Source of the DNA: Pecten maximus
Taxonomy: Eukaryota
DNA: 64,000 nt
Reading direction: 5' to 3'
Assembly (NCBI RefSeq): GCF_902652985.1
Contig: NC_047023.1
Location: 16,616,001-16,680,000 of the forward strand
Part shown: piece after piece, positions 3,191 through 13,265 of the stretch
Layout: each line of letters opens with the position of its first letter
Position numbering within the stretch: the first letter of the stretch is position 1
Made by a program: the position numbers and the translations under genes
Notes under the pieces: model-generated
Seen by the model: the letters and a program-made list of their open reading frames with translations, nothing else
What the model was told of the DNA's origin: nothing
The model's database searches: none

Positions 3191-4346
3191 CGAGGGATGA
3201 TTGATATGTTGTGAGCCTCGTATTAAAGGAGGTACTCAAGGATGTTCTTTCTAAGTCCTACTATTCTTTGACTATACTAGTATAAGGCCGTGTATCCAAG
3301 GACTGGTCTCATTTGGTCTGTTTATATCGACGAGGTAGCACTCTAAAGTAAACAAGACAAGAGACAAAATGGACAAAATCGGTGAAAAAGAGGTGATCCA
3401 ATATTTGCATAAAAATGTTTAACACCTAAGGATATCCATAATGATATGATAGCAATGCTAGGGAAAGATGCCCCTTCATAGGCTACAGTGAAAAGGTTGG
3501 TGGCAAAATTTAAGGGCGGCCGACAGAGCCTTGAGGATGACCCCCCGTCCTGGAAGGCCTGTCAATATTGCAACCCTAGAAATGGTCAATGAAGTTCATG
3601 ATATTGTTATGACTGACAGACGAGTCACAGAAATATATATAGCCAATAGAGTTGGCATTTCACAGGAAAGGGTACATTCCATTCTGACCGAGGATGTTGC
3701 AGTGAGAAAGCTTTCGACCCGATAGGTACCAAGACTTTTGACAGTTGATCAGAAGCACACCAGGCGCACAATATCGCATGTTATTCTTAACCTTTTTGAG
3801 GAAGATCCTGCCAACTTTCGTTAGAGATTTGTCACTATGGATGAAACATGGGTCCATCATTTTACCCCAGAGGCCAAACAATAGACGAAACAATTGAAGC
3901 ACCCTAGCTTTCCCCTGACAAAGTAAGCAAAGATTGTTCTCTCACCTGGGAAGGTTATGACCTCGGTTTTCTAGGATGCAGATAGTATTCTGCTGATAGA
4001 TTATCTCCAAAAGGGACAAACAATCAATGGCACATACTATGCTTCACTTCTGAGGCAGTTACGGGAAAATATTAAACTTTAGCGCCGCGGAAAGCTCACT
4101 AAAGGTGTGTAATTCAGGACTATGCTCCTGTCATTGGCATGGCTGCCATTCACGATTGTGGCTTTAAATTGATTGAGCATCCGTCGTATTCACCTGATCT
4201 CGCTCCATCAGACAAAACCTGTTTCAGGCACCCACTTTCAGTCCGATGATGACGTCATAGAGTGGATAACTTTCTGAACAGCCAAAAGTGGCATTGAGGC
4301 CCTTGATCCTTCAATAAGAGGCTCACAACATATCAATCATACCTCG
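3191..4346 (+). mobile_element. Tc1/mariner (mariner-family) DNA transposon, defective
   Basis: Inverted repeats cgagg(g/t)atgattgatatgttgtgagcctc at 3191-3219 and 4318-4346, extendable to 40 bp with 3 mismatches. TA follows the right end and AA precedes the left end. Confidence 0.93.
3369..4305 (+). pseudogene. Mariner transposase pseudogene
   Basis: Manual translation gives MDKIG..., PGRP, (W>stop)VPRLLT, VTMDETWVHHF, GKVMTSVF, TINGTYY and HPSYSPDLAPSD, with many stops, frameshifts and C-terminal deletions. Confidence 0.92.
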
Positions 4347-5700: not shown

Positions 5701-6600
5701 AATTATAACCATTTTTCGACTACACAGCATTGACACCTGGCCAGAACTTACAGTATACAAATTGGTCTAGTTGATAACTCTTCGCTACCGATTAATTCCA
5801 ATAATTTGTGAACTACTTTGAGACAGCTTTGTGGCTGAGATATAGCGGTATATTAAACTCCATATTATTATCATTATCAACCGACTTTCCTAACCAAAGA
5901 ACCGGTCTGTTATCTGGTTTCAAGAATGATGTACTCTACCGGAATGGTTGAATTTATTTTTGGAAGATAAAATTGATATGAGTAAAAACAAATATTATTT
6001 TCAAACTGATGACAATATGATAGCCAATCAAAACATCGGTTAGAACGCGATTTGAAGTCTGGTTGTCATGTCAGGATACACACATATGCCCCACGTCACT
6101 TTTTGCTGAGATGGAATTTCGTAATACAGTTTTTGTTGTAATCTAATTCAAACAGGTGCTTTATTATCCTTTCGCAGTTTATGTCTGTAATTACAATCTC
6201 TATTTCGGTTTTGTGTTATTCAGAGAAACCGGAGATATATTTACACAAAAAGATCTGTAAAATACGGTTAAACCGTAATGTATATGTACCGTTCTACCTC
6301 TAAAAAACCTGAAGTTAAGAATTCGCATCTGTTTTCGTCGTCTCTGCAATGAACAGAAATTACGGAAACACTGCAATGTAAACGATATCATTTATGTGTA
6401 TCTGCATGTGTGATTCAATTACATTTAACAATCCCCTGTCCATGGTTGAAGGTACATGTATATCTAAAGACCGAGTACGTACAAACGCGTCAATAAAATC
6501 TGCGTTCGTAAAAATGAAACCATTCTCATGCTTAACCATGGAATCTGTACTCAACCGAAATTCCTTTAATTAAACTCGCTTGAATTCGGAAATAGAAGTT

Positions 6601-6717
6601 TAATGACTCATTTGTCTCTGATATAGCGGCTGATTTCTCTCTGATGAATGACTCATTTCGTTGTGATATACTGCTGATGTTTATCTGATTAATGACTCAA
6701 CTCGCTGTGACATACTG
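6601..6717. repeat. ~44-bp minisatellite, left part (interrupted by the Ngaro element)
   Basis: Unit ~aatgactcatttcgctgtgatatactgctgatttctctctgatt, period 44-45 bp. Confidence 0.85.
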
Positions 6718-6976
6718 ATTTTAATTTATTTAATTTAAGTTTATACAAGTGTGAAAAGTCCATCCTCTTATCGTCTAAACATGTTATTAAATAGGTTAGT
6801 ATATTGGAGGTAGATCGTAAGGGAAATATATGCTAATTAGGCCAAGAGGAAGTAACTGCTATAGTAGTCACGTGACCTAACTGACCAATGGTCAGCAGGA
6901 AGCATCCAGTCAGCCATCTTTGTGATGCGAGGATAAGTCAGACTCTAGAGATAGTTCATCTGCTTGATCGTCAACA
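6718..6976 (+). repeat. Ngaro split direct repeat A1 (259 bp)
   Basis: Identical by eye to 11438-11696. Confidence 0.97.
6867..6921 (+). promoter_or_regulatory. Putative Pol II promoter motifs in repeat A (duplicated at 11587-11641)
   Basis: Palindromic E-box GTCACGTGAC (6867-6876), CCAAT inside the palindrome ctgaccaatggtcag (6881-6895) and a YY1-like GCCATCTT, upstream of gag. Confidence 0.45.
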
Positions 6977-7148
6977 TATCTCACCGCACGGTTCCTGCCA
7001 CGATCTTTTTTCCATCACTGCTATAGGGGATACTTTCATACATATTATACATCGCGTGTGCTTGGAACTACTACGATATCGGTGCTTTTACGATGAACTG
7101 TTTTGGGCTTGTTGACCTACGGCCAAATCCTCTCTGAAACAAAGGATC

Positions 7149-8447
7149 ATGATGAGACCGTCACGTAATAACTCGAGATCGGCGCCGTACGACCTTTCTA
7201 TGCCCGAGAATTGGACAGCAAAGAAATTACGAGAAGAGTTAACTTCACTCGGTGTGGTCGTTCCTTCCAATTACCGTAAGTCACGTTTATTGGCTATGTA
7301 CAAAGACAAAACCCAAGTCTCAAACGGGGTTCATTCAACCATGACATCTGACCCGACCCCTGGGCGGATGGAGTTTACGGATTCCCAGAATGCATCGCGC
7401 AATACACACCAAGATGGCGGAGTTACGGAGGTGCTTTCACAGCTGACTGATACGCTAGCGTCCATGCGACAAGATATGTCATCCATTAGACAGAGGATGT
7501 CGTTTCTGGAAGAACGGCAGGTCCCGGCGGCAGCAGCAGCAGGCGGTGTATCGCAAATAGCGACAGATCCTGGCTTAGTACCCGTTCAGGGACCTTCGGG
7601 CGGCGAGTCATTCACCCTGCAGTCGGCCATGGTAGCTTTCCAAACGTCTTCCGCCACATCAAGTACGTCGGGGAGGACCCAATTTGGATTTTCATCGGAA
7701 TCTTTACCATTCGTGGAGACTATCTCACCTGCCATAAGGAAACAAATAGTGGAAGGTAAGGATATCAACCTGGCGTGTTTGTTGATCCCATATTTCAACG
7801 GCCCAGCATCCGGCCATAACCCCGACAAACCCGACCCCAGGTTAATGAGGAGCTTATCCATCGGGGAATTTGTACAGGCATTCAGTATATTTAAACATGT
7901 GATGTGTCAGGCCTACCCCAATAGACGATATGAATTAGACATGTACGAGAGAGACGTGGTCGACATGGCGTCGCGTTACGGCGGCCAGGGTTTCTATGAG
8001 TACCATAAACAATTTAGTAGTAAGGCTGCAGCTCATTTACGCTTTCAAAACGTTATGGTTGACTGGTCCATAAGGAACAATACCATGTTTTGCAACATTT
8101 TCACAAATCTCCCCCCGTTGGCATGTTCACAGTGCGAGAGTACCAGTCACACTGCTGGTTTTTGCCCTCTTATGACTCTTAACACCTTGGATATGAAACA
8201 ACAGTCTACAAATCCCCAATATAAATCTTCTCCCAACGCAGACAGCTATGGAAGACACAAAGTGCTGTACAAAGGCAGTGAGATTTGTAATAACTTCAAT
8301 GACAGAGGTTGTCATCGCGCAAGATGTAATAATCTTCATGTGTGTTTGGTATGTAAAAAAGACCATTCTAAACGTGTGTGTCCCCAACACTCTTCTACAA
8401 AAAACGACTCGACCCCCTACCACAAACAACATCAGGGAAGACAGTAG
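7149..8447 (+). CDS. gag: Ngaro Gag-like protein (432 aa)
   Basis: First ORF of the element. It has a CX2CX4HX4C knuckle (CSQCESTSHTAGFC), a CCCH finger (CNNFNDRGCHRARCNNLH), a CX2CX3HX4C module and an N-terminal HeH/LEM-like segment. Confidence 0.9.
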   Translation: MMRPSRNNSRSAPYDLSMPENWTAKKLREELTSLGVVVPSNYRKSRLLAMYKDKTQVSNGVHSTMTSDPTPGRMEFTDSQNASRNTHQDGGVTEVLSQLTDTLASMRQDMSSIRQRMSFLEERQVPAAAAAGGVSQIATDPGLVPVQGPSGGESFTLQSAMVAFQTSSATSSTSGRTQFGFSSESLPFVETISPAIRKQIVEGKDINLACLLIPYFNGPASGHNPDKPDPRLMRSLSIGEFVQAFSIFKHVMCQAYPNRRYELDMYERDVVDMASRYGGQGFYEYHKQFSSKAAAHLRFQNVMVDWSIRNNTMFCNIFTNLPPLACSQCESTSHTAGFCPLMTLNTLDMKQQSTNPQYKSSPNADSYGRHKVLYKGSEICNNFNDRGCHRARCNNLHVCLVCKKDHSKRVCPQHSSTKNDSTPYHKQHQGRQ

Positions 8448-10075
8448 GGGGTATGCAGGTTGCTTCGACACCTATTGATATTCAGGAGCTTGAACGAGAT
8501 CTAGCATTACATCCAGACAGAGACTTTGTTTCTTACCTTTTAACTGGTTTAAGGTCGGGTTTCCACACCGGAATTACTTCTCTCCCTAGAAACTCCATTG
8601 AGTGTGCCAATTTGCTGTCTGCTAGGAATCAGTCTGATGTTGTGAAGGAACTGATAGGATCAGAGCTTGACAAAGGTTTTCTGATAGGACCCTACCATGA
8701 GTGCCCTTTCGTCACTTACAGGATAAATCCTATAGGCATAGCAGAGAGCAAATATTCTAGGAAAAAACGTTTAATCGTTGATTTGTCTTCTCCACACAAC
8801 AATGATGATAACCCGAGTTTAAACGATTTAATCAACAAAGATGAGTTTTCTCTGCAATATGTGACTGTCGATGACGCTATCAATATTATTAAGCGATTTG
8901 GTAAAGGCAGCTATTTATGTAAGACAGATATCTCCGACGCCTTTAAGCTAATACCCATTCACCCATCTCTGTGGCCTTTCCATGGTATCAAATGGGATGG
9001 TTTGTATTATTTCTATACTCGACTGGTGTTTGGAAGTAGATCGAGTCCCAAGATTTTTGACTGTTTATCACAAGCTGTGTGTTGGATAGCAGTTCACCGA
9101 TATAACATTCCGAATATCCTTCACCTGCTAGATGATTTCCTAACTGTGGATCCACCAAACTTTCATCAAGCCACCAGTACCATGGAGAAACTTATGTGTT
9201 TATTTGAATCGTTAGGTATTCCCATTGCTCAACATAAGACGGTGGGGCCGTCACTATGTTTAGAATATTTGGGAGTTACCCTGGATTGTGATCTCATGCA
9301 GGCAAGACTACCCGGAGAAAAGATTTTCAGAATTTGTGAGATATTAACTGAATTTAAAGACAAAAAATGTTGTACTAAACGTGAACTCCTCAGCTTACTT
9401 GGACATTTAAATTTTGCGAGTAGAGTTATTCCACATGGTCGTTCATTTGTGTCATATCTCATCAGCTTATCTACCAAAGTCAGAGAATTACATCATCACG
9501 TCAAGTTAACTGAGTCATGTAGACTGGACTTAAATATGTGGCTCCTGTTTCTCTCGCGGTGGAATGGGATTTCATTTTTTCTCAACGACAATGTTACACA
9601 GGCGGCTCACATGCACTTATTTACTGATGCGACAGATCGTGCTTTCGGAGGGATTTTTGGTAATAAGTGGTTTCAAGGGACGTTCCCCTTGGAGTTATAC
9701 GAGGGAAAGGATAAGATCTCCATGGCTTTCTGTGAATTGTTCCCCATTGTGATTGCATGTGTGTTATGGGGCAAAGAATGGTCAAGGAAAAGGATTTTAT
9801 TTCATTGTGACAATATGGCAACTGTGGACATTATAAATAAAGGACGTTCCAAAGTAGAGCTGATTATGAATTTAATGAGGAAGTTGACATTTTGTTCAAT
9901 GTCTAACAATTTCATTGTTCATGCAAGACATATTCCAGGCATAGATAATTCTATAGCGGATGCTATTTCTCGTTTCCAGATGGAGAAGTTTCGTCATCTC
10001 GCCCCACATGCAGATCCATTTCCAACACTGTGTCCTCCACTTTCCAGCCTGATGTTGTTCGGGAAAAGCAAATGA
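8378..10075 (+). CDS. pol: Reverse transcriptase / RNase H (first ATG at 8453; possibly expressed as a Gag fusion by -1 frameshift)
   Basis: DIRS-type RT motifs RLIVDLS, KTDISDAFK, LVFGSRSSP, HLLDDFL and YLGV; RNase H motifs LFTDA, ELFPI, HCDN and HIPGIDNSIADAISR. Confidence 0.96.
   Translation: MSPTLFYKKRLDPLPQTTSGKTVGGMQVASTPIDIQELERDLALHPDRDFVSYLLTGLRSGFHTGITSLPRNSIECANLLSARNQSDVVKELIGSELDKGFLIGPYHECPFVTYRINPIGIAESKYSRKKRLIVDLSSPHNNDDNPSLNDLINKDEFSLQYVTVDDAINIIKRFGKGSYLCKTDISDAFKLIPIHPSLWPFHGIKWDGLYYFYTRLVFGSRSSPKIFDCLSQAVCWIAVHRYNIPNILHLLDDFLTVDPPNFHQATSTMEKLMCLFESLGIPIAQHKTVGPSLCLEYLGVTLDCDLMQARLPGEKIFRICEILTEFKDKKCCTKRELLSLLGHLNFASRVIPHGRSFVSYLISLSTKVRELHHHVKLTESCRLDLNMWLLFLSRWNGISFFLNDNVTQAAHMHLFTDATDRAFGGIFGNKWFQGTFPLELYEGKDKISMAFCELFPIVIACVLWGKEWSRKRILFHCDNMATVDIINKGRSKVELIMNLMRKLTFCSMSNNFIVHARHIPGIDNSIADAISRFQMEKFRHLAPHADPFPTLCPPLSSLMLFGKSK
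8399..8452 (+). promoter_or_regulatory. Candidate programmed -1 ribosomal frameshift signal
   Basis: A_AAA_AAC at 8399-8405 in the gag frame, 6-nt spacer, perfect 9-bp stem accccctac (8412-8420) / gtagggggt (8444-8452). pol lies in the -1 frame and is open here. Confidence 0.7.
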
Positions 10076-11034
10076 ACAAACTGTGGGATTTAGCGGTCAG
10101 TCCTGGGACAGCTTCTACTTATTTAGTAGCCATTCAACATTTGTTACGTTTCATCACAATGTGTGGTATAGTGTGTGGTGCAGGACAATTACCACCAATA
10201 TCAGAAGATTTGTTGATGCATTTTGTATCACATTGTCATAATAGTTTGAACTTGACATTTGCTACAATCAAGCTGTATTTAGCGGGGATACGGTTTCATT
10301 ATTTGAAAGCTGGTTACAGTAATCCTTTCGCTAATACGGAAAGACTATCTTATATCTTACGAGGTATTAAAAAGAGTCAGCAAGGAAGTGTTTCAATTAA
10401 GAGATTGCCTATTACCTTTGACATTCTCGATCGCATGTGTAGATTATTACAGAGTGGTGTTTTCTCCAAAGATTTAGACTTATTATTATTATGTGCATGT
10501 CAGATGGCTTTCTTTGGGTTTTTAAGATGTGGTGAATTTACTGTTAAATGTAAGTCCAAGATCCAAGACGTCCTGTGTATTAAAGATATTGTGGTAGCAG
10601 ACGATCACAAAAGCTACTCATTGTTTTTGAAGGTCTCTAAAACTGATCCTTTTAGACATGGCGTACGGATTGCCATTTTTAGTAATACTGTGTTGTGTCC
10701 GGTCATCACCATGAAACATTTCTTACAAATGAGATTCAATCAGGGAGCTACAGTTTCGTGTCCTTTGTTTGCTGAAAGGAATGGGTGTATTCTCACCCGG
10801 GAACAATTTATTTCCTACCTGAGGCATATACTTGCAAGATTAGGTATTGATAGCTCAAGTTATAGTGGTCATTCATTTAGAATAGGTGCAGCAACTTCTG
10901 CAGCAGCAGCAGGAGTTGAGGACCATCTTATTCAAACCTTAGGACGATGGTCATCCAATTGTTTCACTCGTTATATCAGAACTTCGTCCACTGTTTTAGG
11001 TGATGCCCAGCTGCGCATGTGTGATAGGAAGTAG
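10072..11034 (+). CDS. Tyrosine recombinase (integrase) of the Ngaro element; frame open from 10030
   Basis: Catalytic set FLRCGE (R), SKTD (K), HSFRIG (HxxR), GRWSS (W) and RYIR (Y). ATG 10072 overlaps the pol stop as ATGA. Confidence 0.95.
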   Translation: MNKLWDLAVSPGTASTYLVAIQHLLRFITMCGIVCGAGQLPPISEDLLMHFVSHCHNSLNLTFATIKLYLAGIRFHYLKAGYSNPFANTERLSYILRGIKKSQQGSVSIKRLPITFDILDRMCRLLQSGVFSKDLDLLLLCACQMAFFGFLRCGEFTVKCKSKIQDVLCIKDIVVADDHKSYSLFLKVSKTDPFRHGVRIAIFSNTVLCPVITMKHFLQMRFNQGATVSCPLFAERNGCILTREQFISYLRHILARLGIDSSSYSGHSFRIGAATSAAAAGVEDHLIQTLGRWSSNCFTRYIRTSSTVLGDAQLRMCDRK

Positions 11035-11143
11035 TTATATATATATAGATGCTGGTTCCACATTTCTACCATAGGCTTTGTCTTACCTTAATTTCTTGGG
11101 GGCTCTCTTTTTTGGTAACTTGTGTCACCATTTCAATCGATTT

Positions 11144-11437
11144 GGCCTTTAAAATTCAATATTTGCTGAATTTTTATCCCCCAATTCATTTTTGAGGGTT
11201 AATTTAAGCTATCATGTTCTTTTTCATTATTTAACTTTTATGGATACACCTGCCGGGCTCTCCCCAGGTGCTACTTCTGACCTCCTGGGCTAACCTATAG
11301 TGCTGGTACTATAAACCCCAGGCAGAATGTTAGTTTTTACAGAGTAGCCCCTAAGAATGCCAAAATATAGTTAGTTAGTTTCGGTTCATTAATAAATCCA
11401 ATTAACCTTACTACTGGACTTTGTTGTTTTGTATAAA
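11144..11437 (+). repeat. Ngaro split direct repeat B1 (294 bp)
   Basis: Identical by eye to 12721-13014; contains two hairpins and AATAAA at 11391. Confidence 0.97.
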
Positions 11438-11696
11438 ATTTTAATTTATTTAATTTAAGTTTATACAAGTGTGAAAAGTCCATCCTCTTATCGTCTAAAC
11501 ATGTTATTAAATAGGTTAGTATATTGGAGGTAGATCGTAAGGGAAATATATGCTAATTAGGCCAAGAGGAAGTAACTGCTATAGTAGTCACGTGACCTAA
11601 CTGACCAATGGTCAGCAGGAAGCATCCAGTCAGCCATCTTTGTGATGCGAGGATAAGTCAGACTCTAGAGATAGTTCATCTGCTTGATCGTCAACA
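11438..11696 (+). repeat. Ngaro split direct repeat A2 (259 bp)
   Basis: Identical to A1 and abuts B1, reproducing the right-end/left-end junction. Confidence 0.97.
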
Positions 11697-11744
11697 CCCG
11701 CCAACCCTCCCAAGTTTTATTTATTATATAATTAAGTATATACA

Positions 11745-11828
11745 GGATGCCTGCCGGGCTCTCCCCAGGTCTTCCTACATTTAAAATTTTAGGCTAACAT
11801 CTACACCTGCCGGGCTCCCCCCGGGTGT

Positions 11829-11874
<46 letters not shown>

Positions 11875-12276
11875 TTTTTAGAATATGTTTATATTAGCTT
11901 ATACACCTGCCGGGCTCCCCCCGGGTGTTAATCTCTTAGAATGTGTTTATATTAGCTTATACACCTGCCGGGCTCCCCCCGGGTGTCAATCTCTGAGAAT
12001 GTGGTTATATTTGCTTACACACCTGCCGGGTTCCCCTCCGGGTGTCAATCTCTAAGAATGTGGTCATAATATTAGTTTATACATGTACACCTGCCGGGCT
12101 CCCCCCCGGGTGTCAATCTCCTAGATTGTGGTTATATTAGCTACACACCTGCCGGGCTCCCCCCGGGTGTCAATCTCTTAGATTGTGGTTATATTAGCTA
12201 CACACCTGCCGGGCTCCCCCCGGGTGTCAATCTCTGAGAGTTTGGTTATATTTGCTTACACACCTGCCAGGTGTCA
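11745..12276 (+). repeat. Tandem array (~57-58 bp period) of GC-rich hairpin motif acacctgccgggctccccccgggtgt inside the Ngaro element
   Basis: Copies start at about 11746, 11803, 11903, 11961, 12019, 12087, 12145 and 12202, with a collapsed copy at 12260. Confidence 0.95.
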
Positions 12277-12720
12277 TCTTTTTATTGACAGCATTTTGCA
12301 TCTCATATAATTGGTGTGAGCAGTGGTGTTAGTCAGTCACAGACAATGCAAGTTATTGTCATGTTTTATTTAATTGCAATGCTTAGTTTAATTTTAGGTG
12401 CGAAGTGATTCTATTTTTGTATCAGTACAGTTACAACTGTCATATGCTCATCGTTACATGATTGTATATGGTTATACATATAATCGATTGTTTTAAGACA
12501 AGGTTATGAAAATATGTACTTGCATGGCAGAGATTGCTTTAACAGTTTCTTTATGAATGAGTGTATGTATGTTTGTGTATTCCTGCTGGTTTTACGCATA
12601 CTCTATTACATTGTTTTTGTATATCATGTCACTTACCACCATTGGGCTACTCTGTAAGATGAATTTTATCATAAGTTCTTTTTGACTGCCTTATTGATAT
12701 TTACGGAATTCTTTAATTTA

Positions 12721-13014
12721 GGCCTTTAAAATTCAATATTTGCTGAATTTTTATCCCCCAATTCATTTTTGAGGGTTAATTTAAGCTATCATGTTCTTTT
12801 TCATTATTTAACTTTTATGGATACACCTGCCGGGCTCTCCCCAGGTGCTACTTCTGACCTCCTGGGCTAACCTATAGTGCTGGTACTATAAACCCCAGGC
12901 AGAATGTTAGTTTTTACAGAGTAGCCCCTAAGAATGCCAAAATATAGTTAGTTAGTTTCGGTTCATTAATAAATCCAATTAACCTTACTACTGGACTTTG
13001 TTGTTTTGTATAAA
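12721..13014 (+). repeat. Ngaro split direct repeat B2 (294 bp)
   Basis: Identical to B1; forms the right end of the element. Confidence 0.97.
12968..13010 (+). terminator. Putative polyadenylation signal of the Ngaro transcript
   Basis: AATAAA at 12968-12973 followed by GT-rich tggactttgttgttttgt; the same signal is present in B1. Confidence 0.55.
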
Positions 13015-13265
13015 CTGATGTTTATCTGATTAGTGACTCATTTCACACTGACATACTGCTGATTTCTCTCCGATTAGTGACTCATCCACACTGATAAACT
13101 GCTGATTTCCTTCGGATTAATGACTTATTTTGCTGTGATATACTGCTGATTTCTATCTGATAAGTGACTAATTTCACACTGATTTACTGCTGATTTCCTT
13201 CGGAATAGTGGCTCTTTTCGCTCTGATATATGGATTCATTTTTTCTGATAGAATGACAAATTTCG
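13015..13265. repeat. ~44-bp minisatellite, right part
   Basis: Continues the unit interrupted at 6717 (ctgatgtttatctgattagtgactca...). Confidence 0.88.

Follow-up and report, generated by a model that had tools for sequence, protein, structure and literature searches.

A tandem array of predicted bulged hairpins in the 3' region of a Pecten maximus Ngaro element, with homologues in other scallop and oyster elements

The stretch of Pecten maximus DNA analysed here (64,000 nucleotides (nt) of contig NC_047023.1, 64 kb without any N, hereafter the window) contains a Ngaro-type element of the DIRS order at positions 6718-13014, and a non-coding spacer in the 3' part of this element, X, carries the tandem array of GC-rich hairpins described below. 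The element has the layout A1-ORFs-B1-A2-X-B2, with its open reading frames (ORFs) open (Table 1). A repeat search of the window found A1 and A2 to be 100% identical over 259 nt, and B1 and B2 to be 100% identical over 297 nt, with B1 directly adjoining A2. Such split direct repeats, A1-[ORFs]-B1A2-B2, define Ngaro elements (PMC8547959, PMC9210276). Also as expected of Ngaro, a reverse transcriptase (RT) is accompanied by a tyrosine recombinase (YR) in place of a DDE integrase (Pfam RVT_1 and Phage_integrase), and no target-site duplication is present, the flanks rejoining as an uninterrupted 44-nt satellite unit with zero duplicated bases. The YR encoded by ORF3 had 1967 homologues, the best ones being from bivalves (scallops, oysters). 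The window copy is inserted within the 44-nt satellite (6600-6717 and 13015-13264); satellite-specific insertion was ruled out, since other copies of the family have unrelated unique flanks.

Nine bulged hairpins were found in X between positions 11745 and 12276, and each B repeat contains one more, for a total of 11. A preliminary description of the window, made from its letters alone, had reported about nine such hairpins, among them a first copy bearing a different outer stem and a collapsed perfect hairpin, and a further copy in each B repeat. The nine were confirmed by reading, Tandem Repeats Finder (TRF) and folding, and the other copies were found where they had been placed. As a repeat, the array is a 58-nt minisatellite (TRF: period 58, 6.6 copies, 87% matches, 11878-12268), and the repeat search of the window listed 10 copies of its unit. 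RNAfold gave the fold drawn in the preliminary description, with an outer stem of 6-7 base pairs (bp), a CC bulge, a 3-bp GGG/CCC stem and a 4-nt pyrimidine loop, for every unit apart from the last one, which has lost its top. The energies of the array and B copies with the full fold ranged from -11.4 to -13.4 kcal/mol. A tract of 41 A followed by nine T (11830-11879) interrupts the array in the window copy, while other copies have A4 and T6-8; it could be a copy-specific homopolymer expansion or an assembly effect, and contigs from public runs break there.

Table 1. Features of the Ngaro element, in window positions; bit scores are those of the covariance model R1 described in the text.
Feature	Position	Strand	Remarks
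A1 repeat	6718-6976	+	identical to A2, 259 nt
ORF1, Gag-like, 432 aa	7149-8447	+	C-terminal Cys/His motifs; no Pfam match
ORF2, reverse transcriptase	8378-10075	+	Pfam RVT_1, E 1e-8
ORF3, tyrosine recombinase	10030-11034	+	Pfam Phage_integrase, E 9e-6
B1 repeat	11141-11437	+	B-start palindrome, one hairpin, block ACAGAGTAGCCCC, AATAAA, junction end TTGTATAAA
B1 hairpin, CACCTG-CC-GGG-CTCT-CCC-CAGGTG	11244-11273	+	-11.6 kcal/mol; 42.1 bits
A2 repeat	11438-11696	+	repeat search
Spacer X (A2 to B2)	11697-12717	+	1021 nt, non-coding, carries the array; layout alike in F64
Unit 1, B-like core (CTCT loop, CAGG), variant outer stem GGA..UCC	11745-11774	+	35.6 bits
Unit 2	11801-11830	+	fold; 37 bits
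Run of 41 A	11830-11870	+	window copy only; A4 in other copies
Unit 3	11901-11930	+	40.1 bits
Unit 4	11959-11988	+	38 bits
Unit 5, variant GGGTTCCCCTCCGGG, fold retained	12017-12047	+	-13.4 kcal/mol; 27.3 bits
Unit 6, one extra C	12085-12115	+	fold; 30 bits
Unit 7	12143-12172	+	37.6 bits
Unit 8	12200-12229	+	37.6 bits
Unit 9, collapsed palindrome ACACCTG-C-CAGGTGT, top part lost	12258-12276	+	-6.1 kcal/mol; 16.6 bits
14-nt exact reverse complement of B block	12644-12657	+	possible pairing partner of the blocks at 11337-11350 and 12914-12927
B2 repeat	12718-13014	+	own hairpin (next row)
B2 hairpin	12821-12850	+	sequence reading, model R1

Taken by itself, the array says little about its own importance. 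Its units are near-identical recent duplicates and therefore carry little information on selection, and the z-scores of single hairpins against dinucleotide shuffles were modest (-0.7 to -2.3), so that this argument was dropped as too weak. Folding of doubled units was uninformative, since shuffled dimers paired as well. An Rfam scan of the region returned only two chance-level matches (E 0.11 and 0.88), far under the gathering score. The within-array part of the preliminary description is thus weak, and the support for the fold comes from comparison across lineages.

Searches of the P. maximus genome found the array solely within the family of the window element, in five full and three partial copies, all of which carry it, and no free satellite of this sequence was detected. 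Arrays of 9, 9, 8, 8, 8 and 5 units were counted, and the units are positionally orthologous across copies, from which it follows that the array is older than the copies now in the genome and evolves as units are gained or lost. The 26-nt hairpin hardly differs from unit to unit, and the 32-nt linker is variable at many positions. The possibility that X is a degenerate copy of B was ruled out, as only the hairpin and one inverted 14-mer match. A solo copy of the family, with the structure A - 46 nt - B and no ORFs or array, was found at C10:10563124-10563725 (L013/L024); it resembles the isolated AB repeats of Cafeteria Ngaro elements (PMC8547959).

X is also contained in 20 public runs of the same organism, two of which, from one study, are recorded as RNA sequencing (RNA-seq). 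In the RNA-seq runs, the contigs include A2 and B2 together with X, of which the array is represented in pieces; being contigs, they do not give strand, ends or level. In one run (X2), a B variant at window position 11256 has 24 nt inserted, a duplicate of the 3' half of its hairpin. In two runs, X1 (record 3) and X13 (record 15, with a 13-nt overhang that is the start of A), contigs that contain the 3' part of X continue across B and into A (window 9800-13200). Such contigs would fit circles, tandems or B1-A2 read-through, and were not used as a hint of circles or tandems because a de Bruijn graph path through the identical B repeats explains them equally well.

Homologous hairpins were found in other Ngaro lineages. 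More than 100 Ngaro loci were detected in the P. maximus genome by a recombinase search, and families L036-L060 were covered up to 1.5 kb past the recombinase. The family F64 (L036-L038; YR 64% identical) has the same A1-ORFs-B1-A2-X-B2 layout as the window element, and a degenerate array that starts ~190 nt past A2 in X, its B2 and the far end of its X being mapped by coordinates only. The F64 unit is AACCTG-CT-GGG-TTCC-CCA-CAGGTT; five to seven hairpins were found in X, and none in B. The 20-nt pattern CCTGCYGGGYTCYCCMCRGG, with at most one mismatch, gave 105 genomic matches compared with 0 for the reversed control, and all 105 belong to the window family or F64. Reading of the list of pattern matches placed the F64-type single-base variants in the loop or in G-U pairs. 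Pairwise identity of the F64 units was 0.90 in the core and 0.50 in the downstream flank.

A covariance model, R1, was built from the hairpins of the window family and F64 and applied to other Ngaro families, a check proposed in the preliminary description, and it found homologues in scallop and oyster elements. Its matches in the B repeats of a clade free of X arrays were weak, and proved to be true homologues on inspection. Three tandem hairpins are present in B in L039, L041 and L047, while L061 of Ylistrum balloti has hairpins in both B1 and B2, and a second Ylistrum element, L064, has one in the corresponding 3' region. L065, an element of the oyster Saccostrea echinata (YR ~55-57% identical), contains seven tandem hairpins with a period of ~38 nt, scoring up to 40.7 bits. 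These lie inside B, between the B-start palindrome and the conserved block, which is the same relative place as that of the B hairpin in the window.

All the homologous lineages share the hairpin top TG-CY-GGG-NNNN-CCC-CR and differ in the lower stem, which is CACC/GGTG in the window family, AACC/GGTT in F64, AGGTTGT/ACAACCT, CAGGCTGT/ACAGCCTG and GGTG/CACC in units 1, 2 and 3 of L039, AGGCTGTC/GACAGCCT in Ylistrum L061 and CAGCC/GGCTG in Ylistrum L064. Hairpins of the form CCTG-TTC-CAGG in the family F51 (L046) share the core alone, without the conserved top, and may or may not be homologous. With both B repeats included, a full-length RNA would carry 11 copies in the window family, at least six in F64, six in L039 and at least two in L061 (four if a very weak second match per B, of 8.6 bits, is real); in L065 seven are present in the one B that was seen, the second B not having been found. 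Every lineage whose 3' region was followed across both B repeats or across the X array has several copies per RNA, at least 4-6 if the second L061 match is counted. In the YR tree, the window family is sister to F64 plus a group of Ylistrum P0001 and L039/L041, with moderate support, a placement suggesting that the hairpin is ancestral to the scallop clade and its oyster relative, and that its location (B or X) and number have changed.

Across lineages, substitutions tended to preserve pairing, as the preliminary description had expected of a structured RNA. Across 30 distinct hairpins, 90.3% of the cells were paired, compared with 81.4% in shuffled and 29-58% in slid controls, and five of the ten pairs showed compensatory changes, compared with 2.6 after shuffling (0/500). 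The covariation score was 0.228 against 0.097 for shuffled alignments, none of 500 of which reached it, and slid controls gave at most 0.051. The rows of this table come from four lineages, in an alignment fitted to the model; a smaller hand-chosen set showed covariation in the same direction. When the hairpin top was held fixed and the flanks were shuffled, six of seven hairpin types folded better than the shuffles (Fisher p = 2.7e-6). By our own count there were roughly five or more independent compensatory events. Independent lineages thus have a common fold with compensatory substitutions, as is expected of a conserved, structured cis-acting RNA element.

All the matches of R1 are on the sense strand, and the hairpins are located in B and/or X, upstream of the AATAAA of B, so that they would lie in the 3' part of the full-length transcript. 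The preliminary description had also regarded the A/G difference among copies as variation of an RNA type. The part of that claim that stood is the toggle between U-A and U-G, which was found in at least three lineages and fits the sense strand: at pair 8-25, the 30 distinct sequences have U-A in 22 cases, U-G in eight and an unpaired state in none. The other part was weakened, since the toggle is also a CpG/CpA change and the tally of wobble-type against A.C-type changes, given below, was not significant. Among close B copies, one CpG-type change preserves pairing and another breaks it.

As judged from sequence, the array is a tandem amplification of a bulged stem-loop that appears as a conserved cis-element of one bivalve Ngaro lineage, and the hairpin is probably a working signal of the element. 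The structural reading of the array is supported, and the functional reading is plausible. That the top is asymmetric and conserved in sequence, while the stem below it covaries, points to a hairpin that is recognised when single-stranded. The folding molecule would be single-stranded, with the sense genomic RNA as the likeliest candidate, and it is quite possible, though somewhat short of probable, that the hairpins form a multivalent protein-binding platform on that RNA, where a protein of the element would dock. The best candidate binder would be the C-terminus of the Gag-like ORF1 product, which contains the motifs CX2CX4HX4C, CX7CX4CX3H and CX2CX3HX4C, to be read as one CCHC knuckle, one CCCH finger and one CCHC-like knuckle. 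These three Cys/His modules are conserved in Ylistrum and in F64-like hairpin-bearing relatives, and to this extent the zinc-finger Gag of the preliminary description was upheld. The platform could single out genomic RNA, either for assembly into particles or so that the reverse-transcription machinery is recruited to it, and slippage would generate extra copies, which would be retained for the higher avidity that a greater valency brings. MBNL-type CCCH fingers recognise YGCY, and the bulge region of the conserved hairpin is UGCY, a likeness to be taken as a lead only.

Several observations weigh against a docking platform, or against an essential role for the array in X. Pfam recognised no zinc-finger family in the Gag C-terminus. 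The X array is absent from the nearest clade (L039/L041 and Ylistrum L061), which has two to three hairpins in B only, and copies of the window family differ in unit number, from 5 to 9; an array that is neither universal nor constant in number suggests that its large size is dispensable. Many other Ngaro 3' arrays of the P. maximus genome, with units of 31, 38, 23, 33 and 40 nt, lack a hairpin, and the idea that all Ngaro 3' arrays are hairpin arrays was ruled out, as the stem was longer than in shuffles in only four of 11 array units. The rows of the covariation table are non-independent, only about 4-6 lineages contributing to it. The minus strand folds equally well, wobble-type changes outnumbered A.C-type ones by only ~8 to 5 (not significant), and the recurrent A/G toggle could be produced by mutation bias at CpG. 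Finally, the coverage of X in public runs is by contigs, from which transcription and RNA ends are not readable.

It could be that the hairpin in B is functional and that the X copies are by-products of slippage at a palindrome, tolerated and adding nothing, which we consider rather unlikely. Such slippage would account for the 5-9 units of near-identical copies, for the collapsed last unit and for the A-run that is expanded in one copy, and it agrees with the lack of an X array in the sister clade and Ylistrum L061 and with the common occurrence of hairpin-free tandem arrays in the Ngaro 3' regions of this genome. However, the X copies are the sole ones in F64, cores have remained conserved while linkers diverged both in the window array and in the old, degenerate F64 array, and several copies per RNA were kept in each of the lineages read through both B or the X array. 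Less likely still is a role in the minus strand, where the hairpin of a single-stranded complementary DNA (cDNA) would serve nucleocapsid coating, second-strand priming or end-joining of linear cDNA. Retroviral zinc knuckles favour exposed G in loops, and the minus-strand hairpins have purine-rich loops (AGAG, GGAG, AGGA) and fold as well or better (-14.3 compared with -11.6 kcal/mol). In DIRS-1 the cDNA intermediates are linear and single-stranded, and what primes them is unknown (PMC7192593), which also suits a cDNA role. On the other hand, the recurrent U-A/U-G toggle would become an A.C mismatch in that strand, and the hairpins are internal, away from the cDNA ends.

The hairpin could also be an RNA element read by host proteins of the PCBP/PTB type, which bind C/U loops, with effects on stability, on export or on which of the two poly(A) sites, B1 or B2, is used. 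The loops are always pyrimidine-rich (CUCU, CUCC, UCCU, CCCU, UUCC), the hairpins lie upstream of AATAAA in B, and X sets the B2 site apart from the B1 site; but the distance to the poly(A) signal is 120-700 nt, and in most lineages B1 and B2 both carry hairpins, which alone could not tell the two sites apart, so that we give this host-factor reading little credit. A role in duplex DNA, either as recombinase core or accessory sites or as an E-box (CACCTG) or enhancer array, seems very unlikely. Tandem repeats in retroelement control regions are often enhancers, the hairpin sequence is palindromic, and CACCTG/CAGGTG is an E-box, whereas the lower stem keeps complementarity and not sequence, and the conserved top is asymmetric, without a dyad. 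An E-box array was rejected because CANNTG has been lost in most lineages (AACCTG/CAGGTT in F64 and the oyster, GGCTGT/ACAGCC in L039). For tyrosine recombinases the crossover spacer is 6-8 bp, which the gap of 1 to 12+ nt between the complementary arms does not fit; as the arms vary by lineage and the B|A junction, which is conserved, lies elsewhere and differs in sequence, a recombinase core site was also rejected. The homologous, covarying, multi-copy hairpins of other lineages make a neutral minisatellite unlikely, together with the E-box array and the core site.

The docking platform proposed above has partial parallels in known systems. The alphavirus packaging signal consists of several stem-loops, each with a GGG motif, and the phage MS2 and satellite tobacco necrosis virus (STNV) have dispersed packaging signals. 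As in these viruses, many small stem-loops present a short conserved motif on variable stems, and multivalent, cooperative capture by a capsid protein, here proposed for Ngaro, would be common to all; in contrast, the viral signals lie in coding regions and were tested experimentally, whereas those of Ngaro are exact tandem repeats in a non-coding 3' region and are known from sequence. The hepadnavirus epsilon is the packaging and reverse-transcription initiation signal of a retroelement without a tRNA primer. Epsilon, too, is a bulged stem-loop, and because it lies within a terminal repeat the pregenomic RNA carries it twice; however, it is a single larger hairpin, with a 6-nt priming bulge and protein priming, while in the Ngaro hairpin the bulge is of 2 nt and the top stem of 3 bp, there are 4-14 copies, and no sign of priming is seen. 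The 3' untranslated regions of CR1 and of stringent-type long interspersed nuclear elements (LINEs) combine a hairpin with a microsatellite and are thought to be recognised in cis by the RT of the element. They share with Ngaro a structured element beside tandem repeats in a retrotransposon 3' region; however, they belong to elements without long terminal repeats that use target-primed reverse transcription, and what is repeated there is a short microsatellite and not the hairpin. Ordinary minisatellites of transposable elements resemble the array in its 58-nt period, variation in unit number and collapsed terminal unit, and differ from it in that the Ngaro core is conserved at 55-64% recombinase identity and covaries, while its linkers are unalignable. 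Within the DIRS order, PMC7192593 cites Poulter and Goodwin for a 3' terminal hairpin of DIRS-1 as a possible self-primer. On that account it is similar in lying in the 3' part of the RNA of an element whose primer is unknown, and dissimilar in being single and at the extreme 3' end; the Ngaro hairpins have an internal position, with 120 nt or more between them and the poly(A) signal downstream, and they are multi-copy and conserved in bulge and loop.

The preliminary description knew of no account of such an array in the DIRS order, and full-text literature searches (Ngaro with tandem repeat, split direct repeats and hairpin) also found no description of one, the only related remark being that on the DIRS-1 terminal hairpin mentioned above. 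The means by which elements of this order select their RNA and start reverse transcription have yet to be settled, the primer being unknown (PMC7192593). A conserved, covarying, multi-copy hairpin in scallop and oyster elements offers a concrete object for experiment in this regard, R1 could be used as a practical marker for annotating the hairpin-bearing Ngaro lineage, and the array would represent a natural example of a tandem RNA hairpin platform. A bolder proposal, possible but doubtful, is that the hairpin is the first cis-acting RNA recognition signal for the DIRS order: an ancient multivalent docking module for Gag (or RT), shared by scallop and oyster elements, with a UGCY bulge and a pyrimidine loop read by CCCH/CCHC fingers, which might cooperate with the conserved block of B and the sequence complementary to it in X in starting tRNA-free reverse transcription.

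That block is one of few other conserved non-coding sequences. Between the window family and F64, the only ones besides the hairpins were the B start, ACAGAGTAGCCCC, the B|A junction and a promoter-like CACGTG/CCAAT block, and no difference in ACAGAGTAGCCCC was seen among F64, L039, L041 and Ylistrum L061. The 14-mer GGGCTACTCTGTAA of X, when reverse-complemented, equals TTACAGAGTAGCCC, the most conserved block of B, and is kept in five of five copies of the family. In the oyster L065 the block is altered to GCAGCCCC, and an 11-nt exact complement with the matching change is located 1.8 kb downstream (L065:9456 vs L065:11274). The 14-mer and the B block may take part in long-range RNA pairing or form a primer-like site.

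The B start (window 11151-11188) is a three-arm palindrome, AATTCA..TGAATT..(C)CCCC AATTCA, which was also found in L035, L036, L039, L046, L049, L055 and L065, with recombinases that are only ~50% identical. The B1|A2 junction (11421-11469; also 12998-13014), TTGTATAAA|ATTTTAATTT...TTTATACAAG, is conserved in F64 and F51, and a 9-bp inverted repeat, TTGTATAAA / TTTATACAA, flanks the B|A boundary, making it a candidate recombination site.

Other multi-copy hairpins were observed in B in a Ngaro clade of the P. maximus genome that is less closely related. Four tandem copies of (C)TCTTGA-ATCGC-TCAAGA(G), with a 25-nt period, are present in L042-L045 (oriented positions 2661-2778 and 3628-3722), a CTTGAG-ATCA-CTCAAG hairpin in L055/L056 (2840, 3142) and a TAGAACA-TCCC-TGTTCTA hairpin in L060 (3041, 3085), which suggests that the hairpin repeats of B are specific to clades. 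In some Ngaro copies B is directly followed by large satellites without hairpins, with units of 31 nt repeated 30-35 times and of 38 nt repeated 25 times (L035/L040 and L044), and in Ylistrum L064 (10503-15918) a 40-nt satellite of at least 142 units was found after B. At C1:16310251-16319118 (L035/L040), the order A-ORFs-B-satellite occurs twice in tandem.
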